Position numbers and translations under genes: made by a program. DNA of 64,000 nucleotides from Auanema rhodensis (lineage: Eukaryota; Animalia; Nematoda), in assembly GCA_964057225.1 (NCBI GenBank), contig OZ059898.1, positions 1,984,001 to 2,048,000 of the forward strand. Direction: 5' to 3'. Of this stretch, positions 15,001-37,100 are shown piece by piece (position 1 is the stretch's first letter; the number at the start of each line of letters is the position of its first letter). The notes under the pieces are model-generated. The model saw only the letters and a program-made list of their open reading frames with translations. It ran no database searches and was not told the origin of the DNA.

Positions 15001-16842
15001 TAACATTGTCCATCGTCTTTGCCTTGAAAAAAGGAATCTAAAAACATCTACTTTTTGCTAAATTATTTCGAAATTTTTCGAAAAAATTTTTGTCAAAATG
15101 TTTTTGGAAGCAATGTTGAGTGTACATGGAAACTCAACATACACTAATGCATCATTTTTCAAACGATCATAACTAAATTTTGTATTAAGCGTTTCTCAAT
15201 GTAGTATAGTGCATTCGATGCGGATTTTTAAGCTGCGTCGATCTGTGTTATCAGATTTGCGCTAGCTTAAAAATGCACCGAGATATTAACTGATATAAGT
15301 TCACACTTATATCCTCGATTTTCACCCTGAAGAATTAATTTTTTCGTTGAATAACATTGTCCATCGTCTTTGCCTTGAAAAAAGGAATCTAAAAACATCT
15401 ACTTTTTGCTAAATTATTTTGAAATTTTTCGAAAAAATTTTTGTCAAAATGTTTTTGGAAGCAATGTTGAGTGTACATGGAAACTCAACATACACTAATG
15501 CATCATTTTTCAAACGATCATAACTAATTTTTGTATTAAGCGTTTCTCAATGTAGTATAGTGCATTCGATGCGGATTTTTAAGCTGCGTCGATCTGTGTT
15601 ATCAGATTTGCGCTTGCTTAAAAATGCACCGAGATATCAACTGATATAAGTTCACACTTATATCCTCGATTTTCACCCTGAAGAATTAATTTTTTTGTTG
15701 AATAACATTGTCCATCGTCTTTGCCTTGAAAAAAGGAATCTAAAAACATCTACTTTTTGCTAAATTATTTTGAAATTTTTCGAAAAAATTTTTGTCAAAA
15801 TGTTTTTGGAAGCAATGTTGAGTGTACATGGGAACTCAACATACACTAATGCATCATTTTTCAAACGATCATAACTAATTTTTGTATTAAGCGTTCCTCA
15901 ATGTAGTATAGTGCATTCGATGCGGATTTTTAAGCTGCGTCGATCTGTGTTATCAGATTTGCGCCAGCTTGAAAATGCACCGAGATATCAACTGATATAA
16001 GTTCACACTTATATCCTCGATTTTCACCCTGAAGAATTAATTTTTTCGTTGAATAACATTGTCCATCGTCTTTGCCTTGAAAAAAGGAATCTAAAAACAT
16101 CTACTTTTTGCCAAATTATTTTGAAATTTTTCGAAAAAATTTTTGTCAAAATGTTTTTGGAAGCAATGTTGAGTGTACATGGAAACTCAACATACACTAA
16201 TGCATCATTTTTCAAACGATCATAACTAATTTTTGTATTAAGCGTTTCTCAATGTAGTATAGTGCATTCGATGCGGATTTTTAAGCTGCGTCGATCTGTG
16301 TTATCAGATTTGCGCTAGCTTACAAATGCACCGAGATATCAACTGATATAAGTTCACACTTATATCCTCGATTTTCACCCTGAAGAATTAATTTTTTCGT
16401 TGAATAACATTGTCCATCGTCTTTGCCTTGAAAAAAGGAATCTAAAAACATCTACTTTTTGCTAAATTATTTTGAAATTTTTCGAAAAAATTTTTGTCAA
16501 AATGTTTTTGGAAGCAATGTTGAGTGTACATGGAAACTCAACATACACTAATGCATCATTTTTCAAACGATCATAACTAATTTTTGTATTAAGCGTTTCT
16601 CAATGTAGTATAGTGCATTCGATGCGGATTTTTAAGCTGCGTCGATCTGTGTTATCAGATTTGCGCTAGCTTAAAAATGCACCGAGATATCAACTGATAT
16701 AAGTTCACACTTATATCCTCGATTTTCACCCTGAAGAATTAATTTTTTCGTTGAATAACATTGTCCATCGTCTTTGCCTTGAAAAAAGGAATCTAAAAAC
16801 ATCTACTTTTTGCTAAATTATTATGAAATTTTTCGAAAAAAG
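1..16842. repeat. 351-bp AT-rich tandem satellite array, left block (~48 monomers)
   Basis: The unit GAAAAAATTTTTGTCAAAATG...TTTTGAAATTTTTC recurs at 1, 352, 703 and 1054 (period 351). Monomers differ by only a few SNPs. Some are 350 bp (GCGGGTTTTA variant) and one is 344 bp. Confidence 0.99.
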
Positions 16843-16876
16843 TATTCTATTTTACTAGTCTACGACGTTAAATAAG
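16843..16876 (-). repeat. 3' terminal extension (rE) of DIRS copy 1
   Basis: TATTCTATTTTACTAGTCTACGACGTTAAATAAG is absent from the 5' ITR but is present as its reverse complement inside the ICR (17288-17321). Confidence 0.9.
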
Positions 16877-17025
16877 AATTATATTTATTCGAAATGCTTT
16901 ATTTCGTAATAGGTCCTCACATAAAACAAACAAAAAAAAAATTCAAATTATCTCTCAGGTTCCCTTTCCCACGTTTCTTTGGGCGGGAAACAGTGAGAGT
17001 AAGCGATCGTCCTTATTCATTTCAG
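16877..17025 (-). repeat. 3' inverted terminal repeat (rITR), copy 1
   Basis: Reverse complement of 21123-21270, except for two C/T mismatches near the inner end and an A10 versus T9 run. Confidence 0.95.
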
Positions 17026-17270
17026 GTGTCCAAAAAAGGAAGAATAGAAAGGCAGCATGACAATAACAAAATAAAAGAACAATAGTAACAGAAGGAAGGA
17101 AAGGCTGCGGATAGCAGGCAGCATGCTAATTTATCTCTTGCGGTCGTAGTTGGTGCGTTGTGCAGGCTTGAATCTGGAAAGTTATGATGAAGACATCGAA
17201 AGTGGGCGAGCTCGAGTGGAAGTCCTCAGGTTGGTTAGCGGGAGCGCAGTAGGGGTGGAGGTGGGAGATA

Positions 17271-17343
17271 TTCGAATAAATATAATTCTTATTTAACGTC
17301 GTAGACTAGTAAAATAGAATAATTATATTTATTCGAAATGCTT
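17271..17343 (-). repeat. Internal complementary region (ICR), copy 1
   Basis: 17271-17321 is the reverse complement of 16843-16893, and 17321-17343 is the reverse complement of 21248-21270. It lies immediately after the YR stop codon, as in DIRS1-type elements. Confidence 0.95.
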
Positions 17344-17345
17344 CT

Positions 17346-18614
17346 TCAAAAAAGAATCTTGGACTGGAACGAGGTTCTTCGCTCATAGTGGGTGAAGAAG
17401 GTTTTTTCTGAAGCCCAGTTAGCCGCCTTGAGGATGTCGCCTATAGGTAGACCTTGCGCTAGTGCCTTCGAGGTCACAGCCGAGCGTGTTGAGTGAGCTT
17501 TGAAGGTAGTGGGTATGCCCGCGCTGTGCAGGGTCTTTCTAATCCAACCAGAAATGGTGGTGGGTTCCACTGCTGCTCCATTCTTTCTGTTAAGAAAGAG
17601 GCATCTTGTTCGGCGGAGTTCCATGGTTCGAGATAGGTATTCATTTATGCAGTTAATAGGGCACAGGTTATTGCGTTTAGGGAAGTTCTCGAACTTCGCC
17701 TCATGCGGGGGTCCCTTAGATCTGTTTTTATTGCGTTTATTTATGAAGAAAGTTAACCCTTCTGCGTCGATACGCATGTGATCTAGGGAGAAAACGGCCA
17801 ATTCGCTCACCCTCTTTGGAGAGCATAGGGCCAATAGAGTGGCTAGCTTGTGAGTGAGAGACTCTAGGCTGAGTTGGACGTTGGGGCCCAGCCTATCAAG
17901 GAAGTCCAAGACTTCGGAGGGGTCCCATGTGTCTACGTACCTAGCCCCTGAAGGCTTCTCTCTGAACAAACCCCTCATGAGGCGGAGGAGCAGCACGTTC
18001 TCCTTTAGGGAGGGGGAGACCCCTAGGTGATCGGCCAATGCGGATATCGCTACCTTGTGTATGCGTACTGTGGAGAAGGCCTTAGTTTGAGCGAGAAATG
18101 ATAGATAGTTAGCAACCGTTACTGGGTTGGGAGTAAAAGGTATCTTCTGCTCATTGCAGTAAGCTTTCCAGTTCTTGAGAGCACAGCCGTACTGTTTGCG
18201 TGTTCCTGGGGCCCAGGATTCGTTTAGGAGTCTCTTAATCTCTGCTGTTACTCCCTCAAAGGAGTTTGTTAAATCTTCCACGCTGCTAATTGGAAATTCG
18301 GCGACTGCAGGAGAGGATGTGGGTTTCCTTCCCGGTCGGACAGCAGGTTCGGGTGTTGGAGCAGCAAGGGAGGCTCCTTGGATCTCTCTTGGAGTAGGGG
18401 AAACCACATTTGGCTCTTCCAGAATGGTGCTATCACTATAGCCGACCTCTGGGAGCTGGCGAGCTTTCCTAAGGTCTTGTGCAGGAGGTGGAAAGGTGGA
18501 AATACGTAAAGTAATCCGTCTGGCAGCTGCTGCCAATTGAACAAGAGTGCGTTCACTCCTAATGCGGCGCAATCTGGAAAGAAGGAGTAGAAAAGGGCGC
18601 ATTTGGCGTTCCAA
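17346..18614 (-). CDS. Tyrosine recombinase (DIRS YR), 422-aa open frame; true start uncertain
   Basis: N-terminal SAM-like motif SWAPGTRKQY...W..YC. Catalytic motifs SPKRVSEL (R), LCPI, FKAHSTRS (HxxR, 17484-17495), ANW and FFTHY (Y). The frame opens at TTG and the first ATG is at 18602. It overlaps the Gag-Pol ORF by 346 nt. Confidence 0.95.
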   Translation of the reverse strand: MERQMRPFLLLLSRLRRIRSERTLVQLAAAARRITLRISTFPPPAQDLRKARQLPEVGYSDSTILEEPNVVSPTPREIQGASLAAPTPEPAVRPGRKPTSSPAVAEFPISSVEDLTNSFEGVTAEIKRLLNESWAPGTRKQYGCALKNWKAYCNEQKIPFTPNPVTVANYLSFLAQTKAFSTVRIHKVAISALADHLGVSPSLKENVLLLRLMRGLFREKPSGARYVDTWDPSEVLDFLDRLGPNVQLSLESLTHKLATLLALCSPKRVSELAVFSLDHMRIDAEGLTFFINKRNKNRSKGPPHEAKFENFPKRNNLCPINCINEYLSRTMELRRTRCLFLNRKNGAAVEPTTISGWIRKTLHSAGIPTTFKAHSTRSAVTSKALAQGLPIGDILKAANWASEKTFFTHYERRTSFQSKILF

Positions 18615-21091
18615 GTGGACGCGAACAGGTCTATTTTGGGTTCACCCCATTTGGAAAATATTGATCTAGTGATCTCCGGATGGAGCGACCAGTCTTCCTT
18701 CAAAATTCTGCCGCGGGACAGGCAGTCGGCAGCCGTATTGACTTTTCCCGCTATATGCGATGCTCTGATTCTGAGCTTACGGGTATCGGCAAATTGCCAT
18801 AACTCCAGTGCTAATCTAGTGCCCTTCTGGGATTGACTCCCGCCCCTACGGTTGATGTAGGCAATGGCAGAAGTATTATCTAAGAGTAAGAGAACGTCGA
18901 GATTGCGCCAAGTCTTGCCGAACTCTGTTAGACCCTTCTTTGCTGCAATCAGCTCCAGCCAGTTTATATGGTAGTTAATGCGTTCTGCCTCGGACCAAGA
19001 TCCTGACAAGGTATTACCTTCCCACGAAGCGCCAAAACCCTCCAGGGAGGCATCTGAGGTAATGGAGTATCGGGGAGAAAAGGGCGTGAACGAGGATACT
19101 TCTGATAGGCGGGGAACGTCCTTGGTTCGAAGATCCTCCAGGATCTTTCTTAACGATCGATCTATTCTTAGAATCTGAGGGAAGGCATTGGGATCATTTA
19201 CGTTCGTAATTCCTTTAAGCCGTAGGAGGAAGTGCAGTTCACGGTTTCTGAAGGAGAGGTTAGGTGCTACCAGAGACGCAAAGTTCAATTTTCCCATTAG
19301 CGAGGCTAATGCTCTTATACTCAGCTCTGATTGAGCTGTTAAACGAGTGAGAGACTCGAGCAAACCCTTTTTCTTGGCCTTTGGGAGAGACCAGCTCATC
19401 GATCTTGAATTCAGCTGAATACCAAGAAATTCTATTTCTTGTGTGGGTATCATAATTGATTTATCCCAGTTTATCGTAAAACCCGCGCGATCAAAAGTAA
19501 TTAGAATCTCTGTTAGTTGGGACCTGAGACAATCAGGATCCTCCGAGATGAACAGCCAGTCATCTAAGTAGTTGATGAGATTGATCCCTTTACCCCGAAA
19601 ATGGGATACCAGAACACGCATTAGCTTATGGAATATGTAGGGGGCGGAGCTCAGCCCAAAAGGGAGTGCTCTAAATAGGAAAGTGCGCCCCTCTGCTGTG
19701 AAAGCTAGGAAGGGTTGATCCTTCGGATCGATACTAATCGCGTGGTAGGCTGAATGGAAATCGATTTTGATCATGAAATTATCCTGTCGTAGGAGCGACG
19801 GGATGTCCCGAAGGGATTCTAGCTTGAACTTGGGTACTCGAAGAAAAGTGTTCAGGCGCTTTAAATTGAGGATGAAACGGGCCGTGCCGTCCGCCTTGGG
19901 AACGTGGAAGGTCGGGGATATGAAAACCTTCTCCCTCGGGGCGGCCTCTCGAATGGCGCCAGTGTACAGCAGTTCCTGGATATCCGACCTGGGTTGCTCC
20001 GGCAAGGTAGAGCAGATGGGTGGCAGCGATAAAGGTGGAGGTGTGCGGGCAAAGGGGAGACTATAGCCCTGAACCGCGTTAAGGATCTCCTTGTCCCTGG
20101 AGATGGACGCCCAAAAGGTTGTGGTGGAGGATACCCGGCATGCGAAAGGAAAAGTGACTAACCTCTTTCTCTGGTTAGTAGCGAACGTTGAGAAGGTAGC
20201 TTGTCTCTTGGGAGCTGAGCGTGGCCGTTGGGCATCATTCCTGCGAGGAGTTGTTCTGGAGCTTCTGGACAGTTCGGAGTACGACGATAGTTCTGCTCTG
20301 AGCTTCTTGCCAAACAGTTCGGGTGCCGAATCCTCTGGAGCGTTGTCTACCGGGATCACGGTTCCATAGATGGGAGACTTCTTGAAGCTAGGCATGGCTC
20401 GGTAGGGTTGAGAGATCTTCATCTTGGTTACAGCACACTCTCGCAAGTTGGTGCAGTGGGTCTTGATGTTAGCGCTGAGGAAGCGCTCCACTATGGCAAA
20501 GTATGCCTCCTGTTTTGTTGACAGACGAGAGTCCCTATCTATCCTGCCCAGCTTGCGAATTATCTTGATGTTAGAAAGAACGATTAGATCATTCTCGTAT
20601 GCCGTGCGTATCTCAGCTTCGGACAGACGGATAGTGGGCTTGATGTTATTGTCCACGTGAGTAGTGTAGCGGTCGTCCAAGACCGGTAGTCGAGCGAACG
20701 GTGAGTCGATATTAGGGAGTTCCGAGATGAGCTCAGCTCTCTCGGTCGAGGACATGAGCAGTCCCGAGGCGAGTCTCTCGAAATCAGCAGTCTCGGAGGA
20801 AGATAGGCGAACGAGTGGCCTAGATCTGGGTCCGTGTGCCTCCGGTGGCATGGGGACCGTTTCGTCTTCGTCGTCCTCTGAATAGAGGTCCTCTTTCTCG
20901 GGCTGGTCCGAGTTCGGAGGTGGTGGGGAAGGAGCTTCTACCCTTCTCCTCTCGACGTGTTGACGGTCGGTGGAGATAGACGTTGGAGATGTTGAGCGTG
21001 ACGATCTCGAAGAAGAAGAGCTGAAGGCTCGTACTCTTCTCGGAGAAGTTTCAGTCGGGGCTTGTCCCTGACGAGTGTGGCTTGGAGCCAT
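18269..21091 (-). CDS. Fused Gag-like / reverse transcriptase / RNase H / adenine-methyltransferase-like polyprotein, 940 aa
   Basis: ATG start. The Ser/Pro/Arg-rich Gag-like part is aa ~1-310. RT motifs: GYSLPF, FHVPKADG..RFILNLK, KIDFHSAY, LPFGLSSAP, YLDD (19559-19570), FLG. RNase H motifs: SDASLEGFG, HINWLEL, LDN, HIAGKVNTAADCLSR. DIRS MT-like motifs: IDLFAS and YVFPPF. Confidence 0.96.
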   Translation of the reverse strand: MAPSHTRQGQAPTETSPRRVRAFSSSSSRSSRSTSPTSISTDRQHVERRRVEAPSPPPPNSDQPEKEDLYSEDDEDETVPMPPEAHGPRSRPLVRLSSSETADFERLASGLLMSSTERAELISELPNIDSPFARLPVLDDRYTTHVDNNIKPTIRLSEAEIRTAYENDLIVLSNIKIIRKLGRIDRDSRLSTKQEAYFAIVERFLSANIKTHCTNLRECAVTKMKISQPYRAMPSFKKSPIYGTVIPVDNAPEDSAPELFGKKLRAELSSYSELSRSSRTTPRRNDAQRPRSAPKRQATFSTFATNQRKRLVTFPFACRVSSTTTFWASISRDKEILNAVQGYSLPFARTPPPLSLPPICSTLPEQPRSDIQELLYTGAIREAAPREKVFISPTFHVPKADGTARFILNLKRLNTFLRVPKFKLESLRDIPSLLRQDNFMIKIDFHSAYHAISIDPKDQPFLAFTAEGRTFLFRALPFGLSSAPYIFHKLMRVLVSHFRGKGINLINYLDDWLFISEDPDCLRSQLTEILITFDRAGFTINWDKSIMIPTQEIEFLGIQLNSRSMSWSLPKAKKKGLLESLTRLTAQSELSIRALASLMGKLNFASLVAPNLSFRNRELHFLLRLKGITNVNDPNAFPQILRIDRSLRKILEDLRTKDVPRLSEVSSFTPFSPRYSITSDASLEGFGASWEGNTLSGSWSEAERINYHINWLELIAAKKGLTEFGKTWRNLDVLLLLDNTSAIAYINRRGGSQSQKGTRLALELWQFADTRKLRIRASHIAGKVNTAADCLSRGRILKEDWSLHPEITRSIFSKWGEPKIDLFASTWNAKCALFYSFFPDCAALGVNALLFNWQQLPDGLLYVFPPFHLLHKTLGKLASSQRSAIVIAPFWKSQMWFPLLQERSKEPPLLLQHPNLLSDREGNPHPLLQSPNFQLAAWKI
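18574..20162 (-). other. Predicted 1,589-nt spliceosomal intron joining Gag in frame to YR (copy 1)
   Basis: Donor AAGAG|GTTAGT at the Gag/RT boundary. Acceptor CCCTTTTCTACTCCTTCTTTCCAG|A near the start of the YR frame. Both are phase 2, so the join is in frame. This is a prediction only. Confidence 0.55.
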
Positions 21092-21122
21092 GGACGATCG
21101 TATGTGAGGCTCAACGAAAAAA

Positions 21123-21270
21123 CTGGAATGAATAGGGACGATCGCTTACTCTCACTGTTTCCCGCCCAAAGAAACGTGGGAAAGGGAACCTGAGAGATAA
21201 TTTGAATTTTTTTTTGTTTGTTTTATGTGAGGACCTATTACGAAATAAAGCATTTCGAATAAATATAATT
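21123..21270 (-). repeat. 5' inverted terminal repeat (lITR), copy 1
   Basis: Reverse complement of 16877-17025. It ends 31 nt upstream of the Gag ATG. Confidence 0.95.
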
Positions 21271-24200
21271 TTTGTCAAAATGTTTTTGGAAGCAATGTTG
21301 AGTGTACATGGAAACTCAACATACACTAATGCATCATTTTTCAAACGACCATAACTAATTTTTGTATTAAGCGTTTCTCAATGTAGTATAGTGCATTCGA
21401 TGCGGATTTTTAAGCTGCGTCGATCTGTGTTATTAGATTTGCGCTAGCTTAAAAATGCACCGAGATATCAACTGATATAAGTTCACACTTATATCCTCGA
21501 TTTTCACCCTGAAGAATTAATTTTTTCGTTGAATAACATTGTCCATCGTCTTTGCCTTGAAAAAAGGAATCTAAAAACATCTACTTTTTGCTAAATTATT
21601 TTGAAATTTTTCGAAAAAATTTTTGTCAAAATGTTTTTGGAAGCAATGTTGAGTGTACATGGAAACTCAACATACACTAATGCATCATTTTTCAAACGAT
21701 CATAACTAATTTTTGTATTAAGCGTTTCTCAGTGTAGTAGAGTGCATTCGATGCGGATTTTTAAGCTGCGTCGATCTGTGTTATCAGATTTGCGCTAGCT
21801 TAAAAATGCACCGAGATATCAACTGATATAAGTTCACACTTATATCCTCGATTTTCACCCTGAAGAATTAATTTTTTCGTTGAATAACATTGTCCATCGT
21901 CTTTGCCTTGAAAAAAGGAATCTAAAAACATCTACTTTTTGCTAAATTATTTTGAAATTTTTCGAAAAAATTTTTGTCAAAATGTTTTTGGAAGCAATGT
22001 TGAGTGTACATGGAAACTCAACATCCACTAATGCATCATTTTTCAAACGATCATAACTAATTTTTGTATTAAGCGTTTCTCAATGTAGTAGAGTGCATTC
22101 GATGCGGATTTTTAAGCTGCGTCGATCTGTGTTATCAGATTTGCGCTAGCTTAAAAATGCACCGAGATATCAACTGATATAAGTTCACACTTATATCCTC
22201 GATTTTCACCCTGAAGAATTAATTTTTTCGTTGAATAACATTGTCCATCGTCTTTGCCTTGAAAAAAGGAATCTAAAAACATCTACTTTTTGCTAAATTA
22301 TTTTGAAATTTTTCGAAAAAATTTTTGTCAAAATGTTTTTGGAAGCAATGTTGAGTGTACATGGAAACTCAACATACACTAATGCATCATTTTTCAAACG
22401 ATCATAACTAATTTTTGTATTAAGCGTTTCTCAGTGTAGTAGAGTGCATTCGATGCGGATTTTTAAGCTGCGTCGATCTGTGTTATCAGATTTGCGCTAG
22501 CTTAAAAATGCACCGAGATATCAACTGATATAAGTTCACACTTATATCCTCGATTTTCACCCTGAAGAATTAATTTTTTCGTTGAATAACATTGTCCATC
22601 GTCTTTGCCTTGAAAAAAGGAATCTAAAAACATCTACTTTTTGCTAAATTATTTTGAAATTTTTCGAAAAAATTTTTGTCAAAATGTTTTTGGAAGCAAT
22701 GTTGAGTGTACATGGAAACTCAACATCCACTAATGCATCATTTTTCAAACGATCATAACTAATTTTTGTATTAAGCGTTTCTCAATGTAGTAGAGTGCAT
22801 TCGATGCGGATTTTTAAGCTGCGTCGATCTGTGTTATCAGATTTGCGCTAGCTTAAAAATGCACCGAGATATCAACTGATATAAGTTCACACTTATATCC
22901 TCGATTTTCACCCTGAAGAATTAATTTTTTCGTTGAATAACATTGTCCATCGTCTTTGACTTGAAAAAAGGAAACTAAAAACATTTACTTTTTGCCAAAT
23001 TATTTTGAAATTTTTCGAAAAAATTTTTGTCAAAATGTTTTTGGAAGCAATGTTGAGTGTACATGGAAACTCAACATACACTAATGCATCATTTTTCGAA
23101 CGATCATAACTAATTTTTGTATTAAGCGTTTCTCAATGTAGTATAGTGCATTCGATGCGGATTTTTAAGCTGCGTCGATCTGTGTTATCAGATTTGCGCT
23201 AGCTTGAAAATGCACCGAGATATCAACTGATATAAGTTCACACTTATATCCTCGATTTTCACCCTGAAGAATTAATTTTTTTTGTTGAATAACATTGTCC
23301 ATCGTCTTTGCCTTGAAAAAAGGAATCTAAAAACATCTACTTTTTGCTAAATTATTTTGAAATTTTTCGAAAAAATTTTTGTCAAAATGTTTTTGGAAGC
23401 AATGTTGAGTGTACATGGAAACTCAACATACACTAATGCATCATTTTTCAAACGATCATAACTAATTTTTGTATTAAGCGTTTCTTAGTGTAGTAGAGCG
23501 CATTCGATGCGGATTTTTAAGCTGCGTCGATCTGTGTTATCAGATTTGCGCTAGCTTAAAAATGCACCGAGATATCAACTGATATAAGTTCACACTTATA
23601 TCCTCGATTTTCACCCTGAAGAATTAATTTTTTCGTTGAATAACATTGTCCATCGTTTTTGCCTTGAAAAAAGGAATCTAAAAACATCTACTTTTTGCTA
23701 AATTATTTTGAAATTTTTCGAAAAAATTTTTGTCAAAATGTTTTTGGAAGCAATGTTGAGTGTACATGGAAACTCAACATACACTAATGCATCATTTTTC
23801 AAACGATCATAACTAATTTTTGTATTAAGCGTTTCTCAATGTAGTAGAGTGCATTCGATGCGGATTTTTAAGCTGCGTCGATCTGTGTTATCAGATTTGC
23901 GCTAGCTTAAAAATGCACCGAGATATCAACTGATATAAGTTCACACTTATATCCTCGATTTTCACCCTGAAGAATTAATTTTTTCGTTGAATAACATTGT
24001 CCATCGTCTTTGCCTTGAAAAAAGGAATCTAAAAACATCTACTTTTTGCTAAATTATTTTGAAATTTTTTGAAAAAATTTTTGTCAAAATGTTTTTGGAA
24101 GCAATGTTGAGTGTACATGGAAACTCAACATACACTAATGCATCATTTTTCAAACGATCATAACTAATTTTTGTATTAAGCGTTTCTCAATGTAGTATAG

Positions 24201-27200: not shown

Positions 27201-29694
27201 CTTTTTGCTAAATTATTTTGAAATTTTTCGAAAAAATTTTTGTCAAAATGTTTTTGGAAGCAATGTTGAGTGTACATGGAAACTCAACATACACTAATGC
27301 ATCATTTTTCAAACGATCATAACTAATTTTTGTATTAAGCGTTTCTCAGTGTAGTAGAGCGCATTCGATGCGGATTTTTAAGCTGCGTCGATCTGTGTTA
27401 TCAGATTTGCGCTAGCTTAAAAATGCACCGAGATATCAACTGATATAAGTTCACACTTATATCCTCGATTTTCACCCTGAAGAATTAATTTTTTCGTTGA
27501 ATAACATTGTCCATCGTCTTTGCCTTGAAAAAAGGAATCTAAAAACATCTACTTTTTGCTAAATTATTTTGAAATTTTTCGAAAAAATTTTTGTCAAAAT
27601 GTTTTTGGAAGCAATGTTGAGTATACATGGAAACTCAACATACACTAATGCATCATTTTTCAAACGATCATAACTAATTTTTGTATTGAGCGTTTCTCAA
27701 TGTAGTATAGTGCATTCGATGCGGATTTTTAAGCTGCGTCGATCTGTGTTATTAGATTTGCGCTAGCTTAAAAATGCACCGAGATATCAACTGATATAAG
27801 TTCACACTTATATCCTCGATTTTCACCCTGAAGAATTAATTTTTTCGTTGAATAACATTGTCCATCGTCTTTGCCTTGAAAAAAGGAATCTAAAAACATC
27901 TACTTTTTGCTAAATTATTTTGAAATTTTTTGAAAAAATTTTTGTCAAAATGTTTTTGGAAGCAATGTTGAGTGTACATGGAAACTCAACATACACTAAT
28001 GCATCATTTTTCAAACGATCATAACTAATTTTTGTATTAAGCGTTTCTCAATGTAGTATAGTGCATTCGATGCGGATTTTTAAGCTGCGTCGATCTGTGT
28101 TATCAGATTTGCGCTAGCTTAAAAATGCACCGAGATATCAACTGATATAAGTTCACACTTATATCCTCGATTTTCACCCTGAAGAATTAATTTTTTCGTT
28201 GAATAACATTGTCCATCGTCTTTGCCTTGAAAAAAGGAATCTAAAAACATCTACTTTTTGCTAAATTATTTTGAAATTTTTCGAAAAAATTTTTGTCAAA
28301 ATGTTTTTGGAAGCAATGTTGAGTGTACATGGAAACTCAACATACACTAATGCATCATTTTTCAAACGATCATAACTAATTTTTGTATTAAGCGTTTCTC
28401 AGTGTAGTAGAGCGCATTCGATGCGGATTTTTAAGCTGCGTCGATCTGTGTTATCAGATTTGCGCTAGCTTAAAAATGCACCGAGATATCAACTGATATA
28501 AGTTCACACTTATATCCTCGATTTTCACCCTGAAGAATTAATTTTTTCGTTGAATAACATTGTCCATCGTCTTTGCCTTGAAAAAAGGAATCTAAAAACA
28601 TCTACTTTTTGCTAAATTATTTTGAAATTTTTCGAAAAAATTTTTGTCAAAATGTTTTTGGAAGCAATGTTGAGTGTACATGGAAACTCAACATACACTA
28701 ATGCATCATTTTTCAAACGATCATAACTAATTTTTGTATTAAGCGTTTCTCAATGTAGTAGAGTGCATTCGATGCGGATTTTTAAGCTGCGTCGATCTGT
28801 GTTATCAGATTTGCGCTAGCTTAAAAATGCACCGAGATATCAACTGATATAAGTTCACACTTATATCCTCGATTTTCACCCTGAAGAATTAATTTTTTCG
28901 TTGAATAACATTGTCCATCGTCTTTGCCTTGAAAAAAGGAATCTAAAAACATCTACTTTTTGCTAAATTATTTTGAAATTTTTCGAAAAAATTTTTGTCA
29001 AAATGTTTTTGGAAGCAATGTTGAGTATACATGGAAACTCAACATACACTAATGCATCATTTTTCAAACGATCATAACTAATTTTTGTATTGAGCGTTTC
29101 TCAATGTAGTATAGTGCATTCGATGCGGATTTTTAAGCTGCGTCGATCTGTGTTATTAGATTTGCGCTAGCTTAAAAATGCACCGAGATATCAACTGATA
29201 TAAGTTCACACTTATATCCTCGATTTTCACCCTGAAGAATTAATTTTTTCGTTGAATAACATTGTCCATCGTCTTTGCCTTGAAAAAAGGAATCTAAAAA
29301 CATCTACTTTTTGCTAAATTATTTTGAAATTTTTTGAAAAAATTTTTGTCAAAATGTTTTTGGAAGCAATGTTGAGTGTACATGGAAACTCAACATACAC
29401 TAATGCATCATTTTTCAAACGATCATAACTAATTTTTGTATTAAACGTTTCTCAATGTCGTATAGTGCATTCGATGCGGATTTTTAAGCTGCGTCGATCT
29501 GTGTTATCAGATTTGCGCTAGCTTAAAAATGCACCGAGATATCAACTGATATAAGTTCACACTTATATCCTCGATTTTCACCCTGAAGAATTAATTTTTT
29601 CGTTGAATAACATTGTCCATCGTCTTTGACTTGAAAAAAGGAAACTAAAAACATCTACTTTTTGCCAAATTATTTTGAAATTTTTCGAAAAAAG
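21270..29694. repeat. 351-bp satellite, middle block (24 monomers, 8,425 bp)
   Basis: The same monomer resumes in register (TTTTGTCAAAATG). Length is 24x351+1, with an extra T near 23281. Confidence 0.99.
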
Positions 29695-29877
29695 TATTCT
29701 ATTTTACTAGTCTACGACGTTAAATAAGAATTATATTTATTCGAAATGCTTTATTTCGTAATAGGTCCTCACATAAAACAAACAAAAAAAAAATTCAAAT
29801 TATCTCTCAGGTTCCCTTTCCCACGTTTCTTTGGGCGGGAAACAGTGAGAGTAAGCGATCGTCCTTATTCATTTCAG
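29695..29877 (-). repeat. 3' extension (29695-29728) plus rITR (29729-29877), copy 2
   Basis: Same sequence as 16843-17025. Confidence 0.93.
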
Positions 29878-30122
29878 GTGTCCAAAAAAGGAAGAATAGA
29901 AAGGCAGCATGACAATAACAAAATAAAAGAACAATAGTAACAGAAGGAAGGAAAGGCTGCGGATAGCAGGCAGCATGCTAATTTATCTCTTGCGGTCGTA
30001 GTTGGTGCGTTGTGCAGGCTTGAATCTGGAAAGTTATGATGAAGACATCGAAAGTGGGCGAGCTCGAGTGGAAGTCCTCAGGTTGGTTAGCGGGAGCGCA
30101 GTAGGGGTGGAGGTGGGAGATA

Positions 30123-30195
30123 TTCGAATAAATATAATTCTTATTTAACGTCGTAGACTAGTAAAATAGAATAATTATATTTATTCGAAATGCTT
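30123..30195 (-). repeat. ICR, copy 2
   Basis: Same sequence as 17271-17343, complementary to both termini. Confidence 0.93.
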
Positions 30196-30197
30196 CT

Positions 30198-31466
30198 TCA
30201 AAAAAGAATCTTGGACTGGAACGAGGTTCTTCGCTCATAGTGGGTGAAGAAGGTTTTTTCTGAAGCCCAGTTAGCCGCCTTGAGGATGTCGCCTATAGGT
30301 AGACCTTGCGCTAGTGCCTTCGAGGTCACAGCCGAGCGTGTTGAGTGAGCTTTGAAGGTAGTGGGTATGCCCGCGCTGTGCAGGGTCTTTCTAATCCAAC
30401 CAGAAATGGTGGTGGGTTCCACTGCTGCTCCATTCTTTCTGTTAAGAAAGAGGCATCTTGTTCGGCGGAGTTCCATGGTTCGAGATAGGTATTCATTTAT
30501 GCAGTTAATAGGGCACAGGTTATTGCGTTTAGGGAAGTTCTCGAACTTCGCCTCATGCGGGGGTCCCTTAGATCTGTTTTTATTGCGTTTATTTATGAAG
30601 AAAGTTAACCCTTCTGCGTCGATACGCATGTGATCTAGGGAGAAAACGGCCAATTCGCTCACCCTCTTTGGAGAGCATAGGGCCAATAGAGTGGCTAGCT
30701 TGTGAGTGAGAGACTCTAGGCTGAGTTGGACGTTGGGGCCCAGCCTATCAAGGAAGTCCAAGACTTCGGAGGGGTCCCATGTGTCTACGTACCTAGCCCC
30801 TGAAGGCTTCTCTCTGAACAAACCCCTCATGAGGCGGAGGAGCAGCACGTTCTCCTTTAGGGAGGGGGAGACCCCTAGGTGATCGGCCAATGCGGATATC
30901 GCTACCTTGTGTATGCGTACTGTGGAGAAGGCCTTAGTTTGAGCGAGAAATGATAGATAGTTAGCAACCGTTACTGGGTTGGGAGTAAAAGGTATCTTCT
31001 GCTCATTGCAGTAAGCTTTCCAGTTCTTGAGAGCACAGCCGTACTGTTTGCGTGTTCCTGGGGCCCAGGATTCGTTTAGGAGTCTCTTAATCTCTGCTGT
31101 TACTCCCTCAAAGGAGTTTGTTAAATCTTCCACGCTGCTAATTGGAAATTCGGCGACTGCAGGAGAGGATGTGGGTTTCCTTCCCGGTCGGACAGCAGGT
31201 TCGGGTGTTGGAGCAGCAAGGGAGGCTCCTTGGATCTCTCTTGGAGTAGGGGAAACCACATTTGGCTCTTCCAGAATGGTGCTATCACTATAGCCGACCT
31301 CTGGGAGCTGGCGAGCTTTCCTAAGGTCTTGTGCAGGAGGTGGAAAGGTGGAAATACGTAAAGTAATCCGTCTGGCAGCTGCTGCCAATTGAACAAGAGT
31401 GCGTTCACTCCTAATGCGGCGCAATCTGGAAAGAAGGAGTAGAAAAGGGCGCATTTGGCGTTCCAA
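30198..31466 (-). CDS. Tyrosine recombinase (DIRS YR), copy 2
   Basis: Translation identical to 17346-18614. Confidence 0.95.
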   Translation of the reverse strand: MERQMRPFLLLLSRLRRIRSERTLVQLAAAARRITLRISTFPPPAQDLRKARQLPEVGYSDSTILEEPNVVSPTPREIQGASLAAPTPEPAVRPGRKPTSSPAVAEFPISSVEDLTNSFEGVTAEIKRLLNESWAPGTRKQYGCALKNWKAYCNEQKIPFTPNPVTVANYLSFLAQTKAFSTVRIHKVAISALADHLGVSPSLKENVLLLRLMRGLFREKPSGARYVDTWDPSEVLDFLDRLGPNVQLSLESLTHKLATLLALCSPKRVSELAVFSLDHMRIDAEGLTFFINKRNKNRSKGPPHEAKFENFPKRNNLCPINCINEYLSRTMELRRTRCLFLNRKNGAAVEPTTISGWIRKTLHSAGIPTTFKAHSTRSAVTSKALAQGLPIGDILKAANWASEKTFFTHYERRTSFQSKILF

Positions 31467-33943
31467 GTGGACGCGAACAGGTCTATTTTGGGTTCACCCC
31501 ATTTGGAAAATATTGATCTAGTGATCTCCGGATGGAGCGACCAGTCTTCCTTCAAAATTCTGCCGCGGGACAGGCAGTCGGCAGCCGTATTGACTTTTCC
31601 CGCTATATGCGATGCTCTGATTCTGAGCTTACGGGTATCGGCAAATTGCCATAACTCCAGTGCTAATCTAGTGCCCTTCTGGGATTGACTCCCGCCCCTA
31701 CGGTTGATGTAGGCAATGGCAGAAGTATTATCTAAGAGTAAGAGAACGTCGAGATTGCGCCAAGTCTTGCCGAACTCTGTTAGACCCTTCTTTGCTGCAA
31801 TCAGCTCCAGCCAGTTTATATGGTAGTTAATGCGTTCTGCCTCGGACCAAGATCCTGACAAGGTATTACCTTCCCACGAAGCGCCAAAACCCTCCAGGGA
31901 GGCATCTGAGGTAATGGAGTATCGGGGAGAAAAGGGCGTGAACGAGGATACTTCTGATAGGCGGGGAACGTCCTTGGTTCGAAGATCCTCCAGGATCTTT
32001 CTTAACGATCGATCTATTCTTAGAATCTGAGGGAAGGCATTGGGATCATTTACGTTCGTAATTCCTTTAAGCCGTAGGAGGAAGTGCAGTTCACGGTTTC
32101 TGAAGGAGAGGTTAGGTGCTACCAGAGACGCAAAGTTCAATTTTCCCATTAGCGAGGCTAATGCTCTTATACTCAGCTCTGATTGAGCTGTTAAACGAGT
32201 GAGAGACTCGAGCAAACCCTTTTTCTTGGCCTTTGGGAGAGACCAGCTCATCGATCTTGAATTCAGCTGAATACCAAGAAATTCTATTTCTTGTGTGGGT
32301 ATCATAATTGATTTATCCCAGTTTATCGTAAAACCCGCGCGATCAAAAGTAATTAGAATCTCTGTTAGTTGGGACCTGAGACAATCAGGATCCTCCGAGA
32401 TGAACAGCCAGTCATCTAAGTAGTTGATGAGATTGATCCCTTTACCCCGAAAATGGGATACCAGAACACGCATTAGCTTATGGAATATGTAGGGGGCGGA
32501 GCTCAGCCCAAAAGGGAGTGCTCTAAATAGGAAAGTGCGCCCCTCTGCTGTGAAAGCTAGGAAGGGTTGATCCTTCGGATCGATACTAATCGCGTGGTAG
32601 GCTGAATGGAAATCGATTTTGATCATGAAATTATCCTGTCGTAGGAGCGACGGGATGTCCCGAAGGGATTCTAGCTTGAACTTGGGTACTCGAAGAAAAG
32701 TGTTCAGGCGCTTTAAATTGAGGATGAAACGGGCCGTGCCGTCCGCCTTGGGAACGTGGAAGGTCGGGGATATGAAAACCTTCTCCCTCGGGGCGGCCTC
32801 TCGAATGGCGCCAGTGTACAGCAGTTCCTGGATATCCGACCTGGGTTGCTCCGGCAAGGTAGAGCAGATGGGTGGCAGCGATAAAGGTGGAGGTGTGCGG
32901 GCAAAGGGGAGACTATAGCCCTGAACCGCGTTAAGGATCTCCTTGTCCCTGGAGATGGACGCCCAAAAGGTTGTGGTGGAGGATACCCGGCATGCGAAAG
33001 GAAAAGTGACTAACCTCTTTCTCTGGTTAGTAGCGAACGTTGAGAAGGTAGCTTGTCTCTTGGGAGCTGAGCGTGGCCGTTGGGCATCATTCCTGCGAGG
33101 AGTTGTTCTGGAGCTTCTGGACAGTTCGGAGTACGACGATAGTTCTGCTCTGAGCTTCTTGCCAAACAGTTCGGGTGCCGAATCCTCTGGAGCGTTGTCT
33201 ACCGGGATCACGGTTCCATAGATGGGAGACTTCTTGAAGCTAGGCATGGCTCGGTAGGGTTGAGAGATCTTCATCTTGGTTACAGCACACTCTCGCAAGT
33301 TGGTGCAGTGGGTCTTGATGTTAGCGCTGAGGAAGCGCTCCACTATGGCAAAGTATGCCTCCTGTTTTGTTGACAGACGAGAGTCCCTATCTATCCTGCC
33401 CAGCTTGCGAATTATCTTGATGTTAGAAAGAACGATTAGATCATTCTCGTATGCCGTGCGTATCTCAGCTTCGGACAGACGGATAGTGGGCTTGATGTTA
33501 TTGTCCACGTGAGTAGTGTAGCGGTCGTCCAAGACCGGTAGTCGAGCGAACGGTGAGTCGATATTAGGGAGTTCCGAGATGAGCTCAGCTCTCTCGGTCG
33601 AGGACATGAGCAGTCCCGAGGCGAGTCTCTCGAAATCAGCAGTCTCGGAGGAAGATAGGCGAACGAGTGGCCTAGATCTGGGTCCGTGTGCCTCCGGTGG
33701 CATGGGGACCGTTTCGTCTTCGTCGTCCTCTGAATAGAGGTCCTCTTTCTCGGGCTGGTCCGAGTTCGGAGGTGGTGGGGAAGGAGCTTCTACCCTTCTC
33801 CTCTCGACGTGTTGACGGTCGGTGGAGATAGACGTTGGAGATGTTGAGCGTGACGATCTCGAAGAAGAAGAGCTGAAGGCTCGTACTCTTCTCGGAGAAG
33901 TTTCAGTCGGGGCTTGTCCCTGACGAGTGTGGCTTGGAGCCAT
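31121..33943 (-). CDS. Fused Gag/RT/RNase H/MT-like polyprotein, copy 2
   Basis: Translation identical to 18269-21091. Confidence 0.96.
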   Translation of the reverse strand: MAPSHTRQGQAPTETSPRRVRAFSSSSSRSSRSTSPTSISTDRQHVERRRVEAPSPPPPNSDQPEKEDLYSEDDEDETVPMPPEAHGPRSRPLVRLSSSETADFERLASGLLMSSTERAELISELPNIDSPFARLPVLDDRYTTHVDNNIKPTIRLSEAEIRTAYENDLIVLSNIKIIRKLGRIDRDSRLSTKQEAYFAIVERFLSANIKTHCTNLRECAVTKMKISQPYRAMPSFKKSPIYGTVIPVDNAPEDSAPELFGKKLRAELSSYSELSRSSRTTPRRNDAQRPRSAPKRQATFSTFATNQRKRLVTFPFACRVSSTTTFWASISRDKEILNAVQGYSLPFARTPPPLSLPPICSTLPEQPRSDIQELLYTGAIREAAPREKVFISPTFHVPKADGTARFILNLKRLNTFLRVPKFKLESLRDIPSLLRQDNFMIKIDFHSAYHAISIDPKDQPFLAFTAEGRTFLFRALPFGLSSAPYIFHKLMRVLVSHFRGKGINLINYLDDWLFISEDPDCLRSQLTEILITFDRAGFTINWDKSIMIPTQEIEFLGIQLNSRSMSWSLPKAKKKGLLESLTRLTAQSELSIRALASLMGKLNFASLVAPNLSFRNRELHFLLRLKGITNVNDPNAFPQILRIDRSLRKILEDLRTKDVPRLSEVSSFTPFSPRYSITSDASLEGFGASWEGNTLSGSWSEAERINYHINWLELIAAKKGLTEFGKTWRNLDVLLLLDNTSAIAYINRRGGSQSQKGTRLALELWQFADTRKLRIRASHIAGKVNTAADCLSRGRILKEDWSLHPEITRSIFSKWGEPKIDLFASTWNAKCALFYSFFPDCAALGVNALLFNWQQLPDGLLYVFPPFHLLHKTLGKLASSQRSAIVIAPFWKSQMWFPLLQERSKEPPLLLQHPNLLSDREGNPHPLLQSPNFQLAAWKI
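31426..33014 (-). other. Predicted Gag-YR intron, copy 2
   Basis: Same donor and acceptor as copy 1, offset by 12,852. Confidence 0.55.
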
Positions 33944-33974
33944 GGACGATCGTATGTGAGGCTCAACGAAAAAA

Positions 33975-34122
33975 CTGGAATGAATAGGGACGATCGCTTA
34001 CTCTCACTGTTTCCCGCCCAAAGAAACGTGGGAAAGGGAACCTGAGAGATAATTTGAATTTTTTTTTGTTTGTTTTATGTGAGGACCTATTACGAAATAA
34101 AGCATTTCGAATAAATATAATT
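33975..34122 (-). repeat. 5' ITR, copy 2
   Basis: Same sequence as 21123-21270. Confidence 0.93.
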
Positions 34123-37100
34123 TTTGTCAAAATGTTTTTGGAAGCAATGTTGAGTGTACATGGAAACTCAACATACACTAATGCATCATTTTTCAAACGA
34201 CCATAACTAATTTTTGTATTAAGCGTTTCTCAATGTAGTATAGTGCATTCGATGCGGATTTTTAAGCTGCGTCGATCTGTGTTATTAGATTTGCGCTAGC
34301 TTAAAAATGCACCGAGATATCAACTGATATAAGTTCACACTTATATCCTCGATTTTCACCCTGAAGAATTAATTTTTTCGTTGAATAACATTGTCCATCG
34401 TCTTTGCCTTGAAAAAAGGAAACTAAAAACATCTACTTTTTGCCAAATTATTTTGAAATTTTTCGAAAAAATTTTTGTCAAAATGTTTTTGGAAGCAATG
34501 TTGAGTGTACATGGAAACTCAACATACACTAATGCATCATTTTTCGAACGATCATAACTAATTTTTGTATTAAGCGTTTCTCAATGTAGTATAGTGCATT
34601 CGATGCGGATTTTTATGCTGCGTCGATCTGTGTTATTAGATTTGCGCTAGCTTAAAAATGCACCGAGATATCAACTGATATAAGTTCACACTTATATCCT
34701 CGATTTTCACCCTGAAGAATTAATTTTTTCGTTGAATAACATTGTCCATCGTCTTTGCCTTGAAAAAAGGAATCTAAAAACATCTACTTTTTGCTAAATT
34801 ATTTTGAAATTTTTCGAAAAAATTTTTGTCAAAATGTTTTTGGAAGCAATGTTGAGTGTACATGGAAACTCAACATACACTAATGCATCATTTTTCAAAC
34901 GATCATAACTAATTTTTGTATTAAGCGTTTCTCAGTGTAGTAGAGTGCATTCGATGCGGATTTTTAAGCTGCGTCGATCTGTGTTATCAGATTTGCGCTA
35001 GCTTAAAAATGCACCGAGATATCAACTGATATAAGTTCACACTTATATCCTCGATTTTCACCCTGAAGAATTAATTTTTTCGTTGAATAACATTGTCCAT
35101 CGTCTTTGCCTTGAAAAAAGGAATCTAAAAACATCTACTTTTTGCTAAATTATTTTGAAATTTTTCGAAAAAATTTTTGTCAAAATGTTTTTGGAAGCAA
35201 TGTTGAGTGTACATGGAAACTCAACATCCACTAATGCATCATTTTTCAAACGATCATAACTAATTTTTGTATTAAGCGTTTCTCAATGTAGTAGAGTGCA
35301 TTCGATGCGGATTTTTAAGCTGCGTCGATCTGTGTTATCAGATTTGCGCTAGCTTAAAAATGCACCGAGATATCAACTGATATAAGTTCACACTTATATC
35401 CTCGATTTTCACCCTGAAGAATTAATTTTTTCGTTGAATAACATTGTCCATCGTCTTTGACTTGAAAAAAGGAAACTAAAAACATCTACTTTTTGCCAAA
35501 TTATTTTGAAATTTTTCGAAAAAATTTTTGTCAAAATGTTTTTGGAAGCAATGTTGAGTGTACATGGAAACTCAACATACACTAATGCATCATTTTTCGA
35601 ACGATCATAACTAATTTTTGTATTAAGCGTTTCTCAATGTAGTATAGTGCATTCGATGCGGATTTTTAAGCTGCGTCGATCTGTGTTATCAGATTTGCGC
35701 TAGCTTGAAAATGCACCGAGATATCAACTGATATAAGTTCACACTTATATCCTCGATTTTCACCCTGAAGAATTAATTTTTTTTGTTGAATAACATTGTC
35801 CATCGTCTTTGCCTTGAAAAAAGGAATCTAAAAACATCTACTTTTTGCTAAATTATTTTGAAATTTTTCGAAAAAATTTTTGTCAAAATGTTTTTGGAAG
35901 CAATGTTGAGTGTACATGGAAACTCAACATACACTAATGCATCATTTTTCAAACGATCATAACTAATTTTTGTATTAAGCGTTTCTCAGTGTAGTAGAGC
36001 GCATTCGATGCGGATTTTTAAGCTGCGTCGATCTGTGTTATCAGATTTGCGCTAGCTTAAAAATGCACCGAGATATCAACTGATATAAGTTCACACTTAT
36101 ATCCTCGATTTTCACCCTGAAGAATTAATTTTTTCGTTGAATAACATTGTCCATCGTTTTTGCCTTGAAAAAAGGAATCTAAAAACATCTACTTTTTGCT
36201 AAATTATTTTGAAATTTTTCGAAAAAATTTTTGTCAAAATGTTTTTGGAAGCAATGTTGAGTGTACATGGAAACTCAACATACACTAATGCATCATTTTT
36301 CAAACGATCATAACTAATTTTTGTATTAAGCGTTTCTCAATGTAGTAGAGTGCATTCGATGCGGATTTTTAAGCTGCGTCGATCTGTGTTATCAGATTTG
36401 CGCTAGCTTAAAAATGCACCGAGATATCAACTGATATAAGTTCACACTTATATCCTCGATTTTCACCCTAAAGAATTAATTTTTTCGTTGAATAACATTG
36501 TCCATCGTCTTTGCCTTGAAAAAAGGAATCTAAAAACATCTACTTTTTGCTAAATTATTTTGAAATTTTTTGAAAAAATTTTTGTCAAAATGTTTTTGGA
36601 AGCAATGTTGAGTGTACATGGAAACTCAACATACACTAATGCATCATTTTTCAAACGATCATAACTAATTTTTGTATTAAGCGTTTCTCAATGTAGTATA
36701 GTGCATTCGATGCGGATTTTTAAGCTGCGTCGATCTGTGTTATCAGATTTGCGCTAGCTTAAAAATGCACCGAGATATCAACTGATATAAGTTCACACTT
36801 ATATCCTCGATTTTCACCCTGAAGAATTAATTTTTTCGTTGAATAACATTGTCCATCGTCTTTGCCTTGAAAAAAGGAATCTAAAAACATCTACTTTTTG
36901 CTAAATTATTTTGAAATTTTTCGAAAAAATTTTTGTCAAAATGTTTTTGGAAGCAATGTTGAGTGTACATGGAAACTCAACATACACTAATGCATCATTT
37001 TTCAAACGATCATAACTAATTTTTGTATTAAGCGTTTCTCAGTGTAGTAGAGCGCATTCGATGCGGATTTTTAAGCTGCGTCGATCTGTGTTATCAGATT

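Follow-up and report, generated by a model that had tools for sequence, protein, structure and literature searches.

Retroviruses use their unspliced transcript as the genome and splice it into subgenomic mRNAs, including the env mRNA and the spliced pol mRNA of foamy viruses. The Drosophila element copia makes a 2-kb spliced gag RNA and barley BARE a gag RNA, in both of which pol is spliced out and the ratio of products is changed. DIRS elements are not retroviruses and have neither long terminal repeats nor a DDE integrase; their tyrosine recombinase (YR) open reading frame (ORF) overlaps pol out of frame and often lacks a start codon, and the literature that we found gives no mechanism for its expression. 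Here we describe a DIRS1-like element on the minus strand of a stretch of the Auanema rhodensis genome (contig OZ059898.1, positions 1,984,001 to 2,048,000; the whole 64,000-nt stretch is referred to as the window). Its RNA is probably spliced from position 20163 to position 18573, a junction that links a Gag-like region to the recombinase.

The closest described systems are Dictyostelium DIRS-1 and similar elements, which share with the window element the inverted terminal repeats (ITRs), a bipartite internal complementary region (ICR), Gag, a reverse transcriptase (RT)/RNase H/methyltransferase ORF, and an overlapping YR ORF (PMC3266345; PMC7192593). A review of DIRS1-like elements reports long pol/YR overlaps in half of 28 elements and mentions no mechanism, introns, or splicing (PMC3266345), and a functional study of DIRS-1 mentions splicing for reporter introns only (PMC7192593). 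No description of natural DIRS splicing was found in full-text searches of the literature; an earlier mention is possible, as Goodwin and Poulter 2001 and 2004 lie outside that coverage.

The window element resembles the retroviruses in the arrangement of its predicted splice sites, a suboptimal 5′ one close to gag and a 3′ one ahead of an ORF further on. It differs in that the predicted intron is the RT/RNase H region itself, the product would be a recombinase fused to Gag or to a pol-frame leader, and the acceptor lies inside a coding domain that is read in the other frame. The relatives of the element recall copia and BARE, in that pol would be removed and gag left intact by a donor just after the gag stop; the copia and BARE splices yield Gag alone, whereas exon 2 of the window element is in frame with an enzyme ORF. 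There is also a likeness to retroviral −1 gag-pol frameshifting, in which the second ORF likewise overlaps the first and is read in frame −1, but the pol/YR overlap of the window, unlike retroviral frameshift sites, has no canonical heptamer. The proposed splice would be a variant of the known subgenomic-splicing mechanism, one that can plausibly be extended to much of the DIRS order.

The coding regions and predicted splice signals of the window element are as follows.

18269..21091, minus strand: ORF1, 940 aa, Gag-like region followed by RT, RNase H, and a methyltransferase-like domain
17346..18614, minus strand: YR ORF, in the −1 frame of ORF1, open from 18641 (the preceding stop)
20157..20164, minus strand: predicted 5′ splice site AG/GTTAGT, which divides codon 310 between its second and third bases (phase 2)
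18574..18597, minus strand: predicted 3′ splice site, pyrimidine tract plus CAG, with exon 2 starting at 18573
18574..20162, minus strand: predicted facultative intron of 1,589 nt, containing the RT and RNase H regions and the first part of the methyltransferase-like domain

ORF1 can be aligned over its whole length with DIRS pol proteins, and the DLFAS, PDP, and AFPPF motifs are among the parts that match. Its RT matches Pfam RVT_1 (aa 398–560, E 1e-21), and the methyltransferase-like domain has a weak Dam match (aa 798–902, E 0.0095) that falls under the Pfam cut-off. The N-terminal 310 aa are called Gag-like from their position alone; they match no family, and searches with residues 1–310 and 95–312 returned no homologue and no Gag-YR fusion protein. 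The YR ORF overlaps ORF1 by 345 nt, has homologues of up to 59% identity, and matches Pfam Phage_integrase (aa 250–412, E 6.9e-8), its conserved domain beginning near aa 105.

The original prediction, made from the letters of the window, had placed a donor AG/GTTAGT at codon R310, where the Gag-like region ends and RT is about to begin, and a pyrimidine tract with CAG/A 40 nt within the YR frame. Both are present. On the minus strand the donor reads ...AACCAGAGAAAGAG/GTTAGTCAC (AG, 20164-20163; GT, 20162-20161), with ORF1 encoding ...FATNQRKR-LVTF across it. The acceptor reads CCCTTTTCTACTCCTTCTTTCCAG/ATTGCGCC (AG, 18575-18574), with pyrimidines at 21 of 22 positions before CAG/A, and the YR ORF translation at this point is ...LLLLSRLRRIRSERT. 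The YR frame opens 40 nt 5′ of the acceptor counted from its first TTG, or 68 nt from the preceding stop. The predicted junction, ...AGAAAGAG^ATTGCGCC..., joins AG to A to give an AGA (Arg) codon in the YR frame, and counting the spliced codons (309 plus 2 nt in exon 1; 1 nt plus 408 and a stop in exon 2) confirms the 718-aa Gag-YR product that had been proposed. A pair of splice-site consensus sequences brackets the region to be skipped, in phase with the downstream YR ORF. There are nine acceptor-like sites in the element, and only the one at 18573 lies in the open YR frame, 5′ of the YR domain, and in phase.

Two other uses of these sites were considered and rejected. Were the donor joined instead to CCAG at 20097, the 66-nt intron would take with it the invariant Trp327 region of RT, and spliced-leader trans-splicing at 18573 would leave the YR frame without an AUG. 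Within the 4,434 nt of the element GTNAGT occurs once in the sense direction, at the donor itself, and five times on the antisense strand. Sense-strand depletion of this motif was dropped as an argument: the counts are 1 versus 5 in the window element and its relative L001, but 4 versus 5 in L003 and 7 versus 4 in L004.

From these signals the following scheme can be proposed. Full-length RNA would serve both as genome and as mRNA for the 940-aa Gag-RT-RNase H-methyltransferase protein. A fraction of it would be spliced, with the weak donor AG/GUUAGU where Gag meets RT joined to the acceptor that lies 68 nt past the opening of the YR frame, removing 1,589 nt and leaving an mRNA of ~2.8 kb whose 718-aa product would consist of Gag, an Arg/Pro-rich linker, and the recombinase, in that order. 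In a family such as this, with gag and pol fused, the spliced RNA would encode the Gag-recombinase fusion directly. The unusual U at donor position +3 is forced: with A or G there (GUAAGU or GUGAGU), phase 2 would bring a stop, UAA or UGA, into the Gag-Pol frame. Among donors that permit read-through of the unspliced RNA GTTAGT is about the best, and a weakened donor suits a site that must mostly be skipped. That the sites are used, how often, that this donor pairs with this acceptor, and that the fusion acts as a recombinase are all predicted here from sequence. That tethering to Gag aids targeting of the recombinase is speculation. If the scheme is correct, a conserved facultative intron answers how the DIRS recombinase is expressed, and a whole retrotransposon order joins the retroelements with subgenomic splicing; the predicted fusion would bear on the way in which the recombinase encounters the cDNA, and perhaps its satellite target, and the splice rule would be a simple guide for annotating DIRS gene models.

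The window element was compared with its own clade. L001 is the contig of the 59%-identical relative found with the YR ORF, and has a similar fused Gag-Pol ORF and overlapping YR ORF; L003, L004, and L005 were found by an exhaustive search with ORF1. ORF1 protein identity to the window is 53–55% for L001 and 33–38% for the other three. Another candidate, L002, was set aside as a decayed, frameshifted copy from a distant family. In all five elements AG/GTTAGT is present in phase 2 at the end of the Gag-like region, where it encodes R-L-V. The donor is an 8-nt island in otherwise unrelated surroundings, and blastn cannot align the linker between the window and L001. All five also have CCAG/R at the ‘PD/DP’ motif of the methyltransferase, 58–63 nt 3′ of the DLFAS motif and in the phase that continues the YR frame, and in each the YR frame is closed by a stop 6–22 codons 5′ of the acceptor, so that the claim of a frame opening just upstream of the acceptor holds for the window and all four relatives. 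The homologous predicted introns of the relatives are 1,586–1,640 nt long, and the spliced form of each of the five elements is a single long ORF of 509–736 codons. Donor, acceptor, and phase, for which conservation in related DIRS elements had been proposed as a check, are therefore conserved in L001, L003, L004, and L005. When translations of the window and L001 are compared by eye, the YR-frame linker within the overlap is poorly conserved, consistent with a spacer whose sole requirement is an open frame. In L005 GTTAGT occurs twice, at 1088 and 1121 (33 nt apart; K-R-L-V-T and K-P-L-V-P), with AG preceding only the first; part of the donor region may have undergone a small duplication here.

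This conservation bears on two other explanations. One is that the two sites and the open frame coincide in the window by chance; GT and AG motifs are indeed common, as the nine acceptor-like sites in the element illustrate, but the nucleotides are conserved in four relatives and the enrichment across families described below exceeds 10-fold, and we regard chance as extremely improbable. The other is that translation of the recombinase starts at ATG 18602, the RNA being initiated or translated internally. That ATG is the fifth codon of the YR ORF, and no other ATG precedes the conserved core domain in this frame. Its position is 5′ of the acceptor, however, and L001 has a TAA two codons upstream at the aligned place and no ATG there, which weakens the case for this start; moreover, 12 of 39 families have no YR-frame ATG before the core, and ATG positions are variable elsewhere. 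No evidence of a promoter was found, although no search aimed at one was made. Use of ATG 18602 is thus very unlikely. L001 has an in-frame YR ATG further on, overlapping the pol stop as ATGA (2541-2544) in the style of reinitiation; the window, unlike L001, reads AAG ATT TAA at its pol stop, with no ATG.

The predicted splice from Gag to recombinase was then examined in a broader set. A pattern scan of metagenome contigs gave 80 further DIRS loci (L007–L086), and clustering at 80% nucleotide identity reduced the collection to 56 non-redundant families, including that of the window. Each locus was anchored on the start of RT, and donors were counted over 55 families. In the 100 nt before RT, GT[AGT]AGT occurs 24 times and AGGT[AGT]AG 27 times, whereas donor-like hexamers elsewhere (−1500 to +2800) number ~0.02–0.05 per 100-nt bin per locus on sense and antisense strands alike, with a rise on both strands near and past the 3′ end. 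The Poisson P for the pile-up before RT is about 6e-15, a value that, like the other P values given here, is optimistic because the families are not phylogenetically independent. The residues encoded across the donors vary (V-S, V-R, V-C, V-G) while GT.AG is fixed, which indicates a constraint on the nucleotides.

A donor was then called where at least 5 of 6 positions of AG/GTRAGT matched within 165 nt upstream of RT, and families were divided by their pol/YR overlap into medium (150–900 nt) and very long (YR frame open across almost all of pol). Donors are present in 34 of 40 medium-overlap families; equal-sized control windows inside pol contain one in 14 of 550 cases (2.5%). Families of the DIRS-1 type differ from the window element, their YR frame being open across nearly all of pol, and here the donor is found in 0 of 7 (Fisher P 2.7e-5 relative to the medium-overlap families). 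These very-long-overlap families (the L009 cluster, L011, L027, L029, L048, L056, and L076; overlaps of ~2,000–2,400 nt, DIRS-1 style) may have a second, splice-free route to the recombinase frame.

Acceptors are likewise placed consistently. More than 12 families have a strong acceptor, TTTCCNCCNTTYAG/, at the AFPPF motif, 0–30 nt after the YR frame opens, and in several of these families the TAG of the acceptor is itself the stop that closes the YR frame. The Ser that follows AFPPF is coded AGY in 26 of 30 families, compared with 25% of pol Ser codons overall. Just 5′ of the AFPPF acceptor the YR frame has ~9.8 stops per 100 codons, and from there to the pol stop it has none. When the best donor of each family and its best acceptor near the frame opening were selected irrespective of phase, the pol frame was joined to the YR frame in 26 of 34 pairs. 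The window clade departs from the common pattern in a compensatory manner: phase 2 takes the place of phase 0 at the donor, and the acceptor is found ~80 nt closer to the 5′ end, with a phase to match. The presence of a donor is not associated with that of an AFPPF-AG acceptor taken alone (Fisher P = 1.0), because donors also pair with acceptors at other positions.

These results also bear on whether the donor is real but serves another purpose, either pairing with an acceptor further downstream to make a Gag-only mRNA, as in Drosophila copia, or binding U1 snRNP to stabilize the RNA, with YR translated in some other way. Such a role would be served by any acceptor in the 24 of 28 separate-gag families whose donor lies 2–54 nt past the gag stop, where the gag ORF stays intact, and the acceptor motifs do fall within conserved protein motifs. 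It would leave without explanation the in-phase pairs, the joint shift of donor phase and acceptor position that keeps the frame in the window clade, the AGY bias at the acceptor, the opening of the YR frame at or just before it, and the lack of donors where that frame is open across all of pol. A donor unconnected with the recombinase is, on these grounds, quite improbable.

Splicing to the recombinase frame must also be weighed against ribosomal frameshifting, of which DIRS elements appear to make use elsewhere. Where gag is a separate ORF, 25 of 28 families have pol in frame −1 relative to it, and the gag/pol overlaps (mean 144 nt) contain classical heptamers such as TTTTTTA, AAAAAAC, and TTTAAAC in 23 of 29. 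Nearly all the loci examined have YR in frame −1 relative to pol, and a −1 shift near the end of ORF1 could therefore yield a Gag-Pol-YR polyprotein, with the splice-like signals unused for the recombinase. No heptamer of the canonical form X XXY YYZ, with A or U as Y, lies in the window overlap; what it does contain is AAACCCA together with relaxed matches, the nearest being the following.

18293..18299, minus strand: GAATTTC, the nearest approach to a −1 slippery heptamer in the overlap, non-canonical

Its counterpart in L001 is AAATTTC (2514), at a homologous N-F-Q ten codons before the pol stop, and this shared position is, with the gag/pol precedent and the −1 register, what speaks for a frameshift. 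Against it, the pol/YR overlaps are 2.5 times longer than the gag/pol overlaps (mean 354 nt), and some canonical heptamer is present in 10 of 39 families and none in 29 of 39, compared with the 23 of 29 gag/pol overlaps that have one. A frameshift would also leave unexplained why the −1 frame is open for at least 100 codons upstream, with ~10 stops per 100 codons just before, and why donors pile up ahead of RT. We consider it an unlikely route to the recombinase; the relatives appear to use −1 frameshifting for gag-pol and not for YR.

The position of the donors in separate-gag families suggests how the two processes could be combined. With the donor after the gag stop (e.g., L021, L025, L028, and L031), a spliced RNA would keep gag whole, and a stop codon this close before an exon junction escapes nonsense-mediated decay. 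The same −1 frameshift, occurring on the spliced RNA, would then give Gag-recombinase in place of Gag-Pol.

L033, L039, L067, L077: other families with a donor downstream of the gag stop

We lean toward the view that splicing out RT, RNase H, and methyltransferase sequences is a general and ancient expression strategy of DIRS1-like elements across eukaryotes. The general form of the model would have a 5′ splice site within ~55 nt after the gag stop, sparing that stop from nonsense-mediated decay, and a 3′ splice site within the stretch that encodes the methyltransferase, at the very point of YR frame opening. By way of a gag/pol −1 frameshift or a fused frame, unspliced RNA would give Gag-Pol and spliced RNA the Gag-recombinase, and a YR ORF open across all of pol would be an alternative, splice-free solution. 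The proposal that a splice explains how the overlapping YR ORF is expressed is in this respect supported by comparative evidence, both from the window clade and from the 56 families.

Apart from the non-independence of the families, several points weigh against splicing, in the window element or in general. The support is comparative. The three listed RNA runs (~20 Mb each, matched by species label, with a word share of 0.00) gave zero contigs against 16840-21273, which does not amount to evidence of absence. No protein of the spliced form was found in the protein searches made and no contig of it among the compared loci, and neither 22–24-mers of the spliced junction nor a junction copy lacking RT is present in the window and the compared loci, which is a small amount of sequence. 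The binomial probability of 26 in-phase pairs out of 34 is 3e-7 relative to 1/3, but an open frame allows strong donors in two of three phases, which moves the chance rate toward 1/2; the other 8 of 34 families, L038 and L071 among them, are out of phase. Conservation of the acceptor motifs is partly at the protein level, as they lie in conserved pyrimidine-rich codons (F-P-P-F, P-D), and the acceptor of L003 has a poor pyrimidine tract. The relative L006, whose YR overlap is only 70 nt, can be read both ways: it has R-L-V-T-F with R-L-V coded CGG TTG GTT and no donor, which speaks for the splice in the elements with a longer overlap, but a tripeptide retained with other codons could reflect constraint on the protein. 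The thresholds and scoring are simple and were set during the analysis.

Several individual contigs were examined in this connection. L038 and L071, and also L066, have a fused Gag-Pol with a perfect GTAG/GTGAGTA donor in phase 1, out of phase with the best acceptor. Three longer YR matches (P0003, P0009, and P0012) were considered as possible Gag fusions and rejected, being MT-YR (methyltransferase-YR) read-throughs or long alternative-frame ORFs, and two short YR contigs (L087 and L088) considered as spliced forms are unspliced DNA.

The window element is a complete and apparently intact DIRS1-like tyrosine-recombinase retrotransposon of 4,434 nt, with a structure canonical for the class as judged from its sequence features: YR takes the place of a DDE integrase, RT/RNase H is followed by the methyltransferase-like domain, and both ITRs and an ICR are present. 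It occurs twice in the window.

16840..21273, minus strand: DIRS1-like retrotransposon copy 1, with ITRs, ICR, and RT, methyltransferase-like, and YR domains; identical to copy 2
29692..34125, minus strand: DIRS1-like retrotransposon copy 2; its predicted intron would start with GT at 33014 and end with AG at 31426, exon 2 following from 31425
21123..21273, minus strand: left (5′) ITR of copy 1, complementary to 16874-17025 at 94–99%
16874..17025, minus strand: right (3′) ITR of copy 1, with the terminus reaching 16840; the ITRs are ~150 nt each
17271..17343, minus strand: bipartite ICR of copy 1, its halves matching both termini

The right terminus (16840-16893) has its complement in one half of the ICR (17271-17324, 98%) and the left terminus (21248-21273) in the other (17318-17343, 96%); the halves share 7 nt (17318-17324). 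Two copies of one family on a single contig were also seen in the metagenome set, where L073 carries them in inverted orientation (2221-4014, plus strand; 6431-7996, minus strand).

A 351-bp satellite in ~181 copies makes up the entire 64-kb window, and the two DIRS elements are inserted in it. The two elements are 12,852 nt apart and identical across all 4,434 nt, both splice sites included. Their flanks differ at 4 positions (16777, 16792, 16814, and 16823) in the 140 nt past the right terminus, and at none in the 127 nt past the left terminus. The identity of the copies together with the differences in the flanks fits recent site-specific insertion or conversion better than a simple block duplication.

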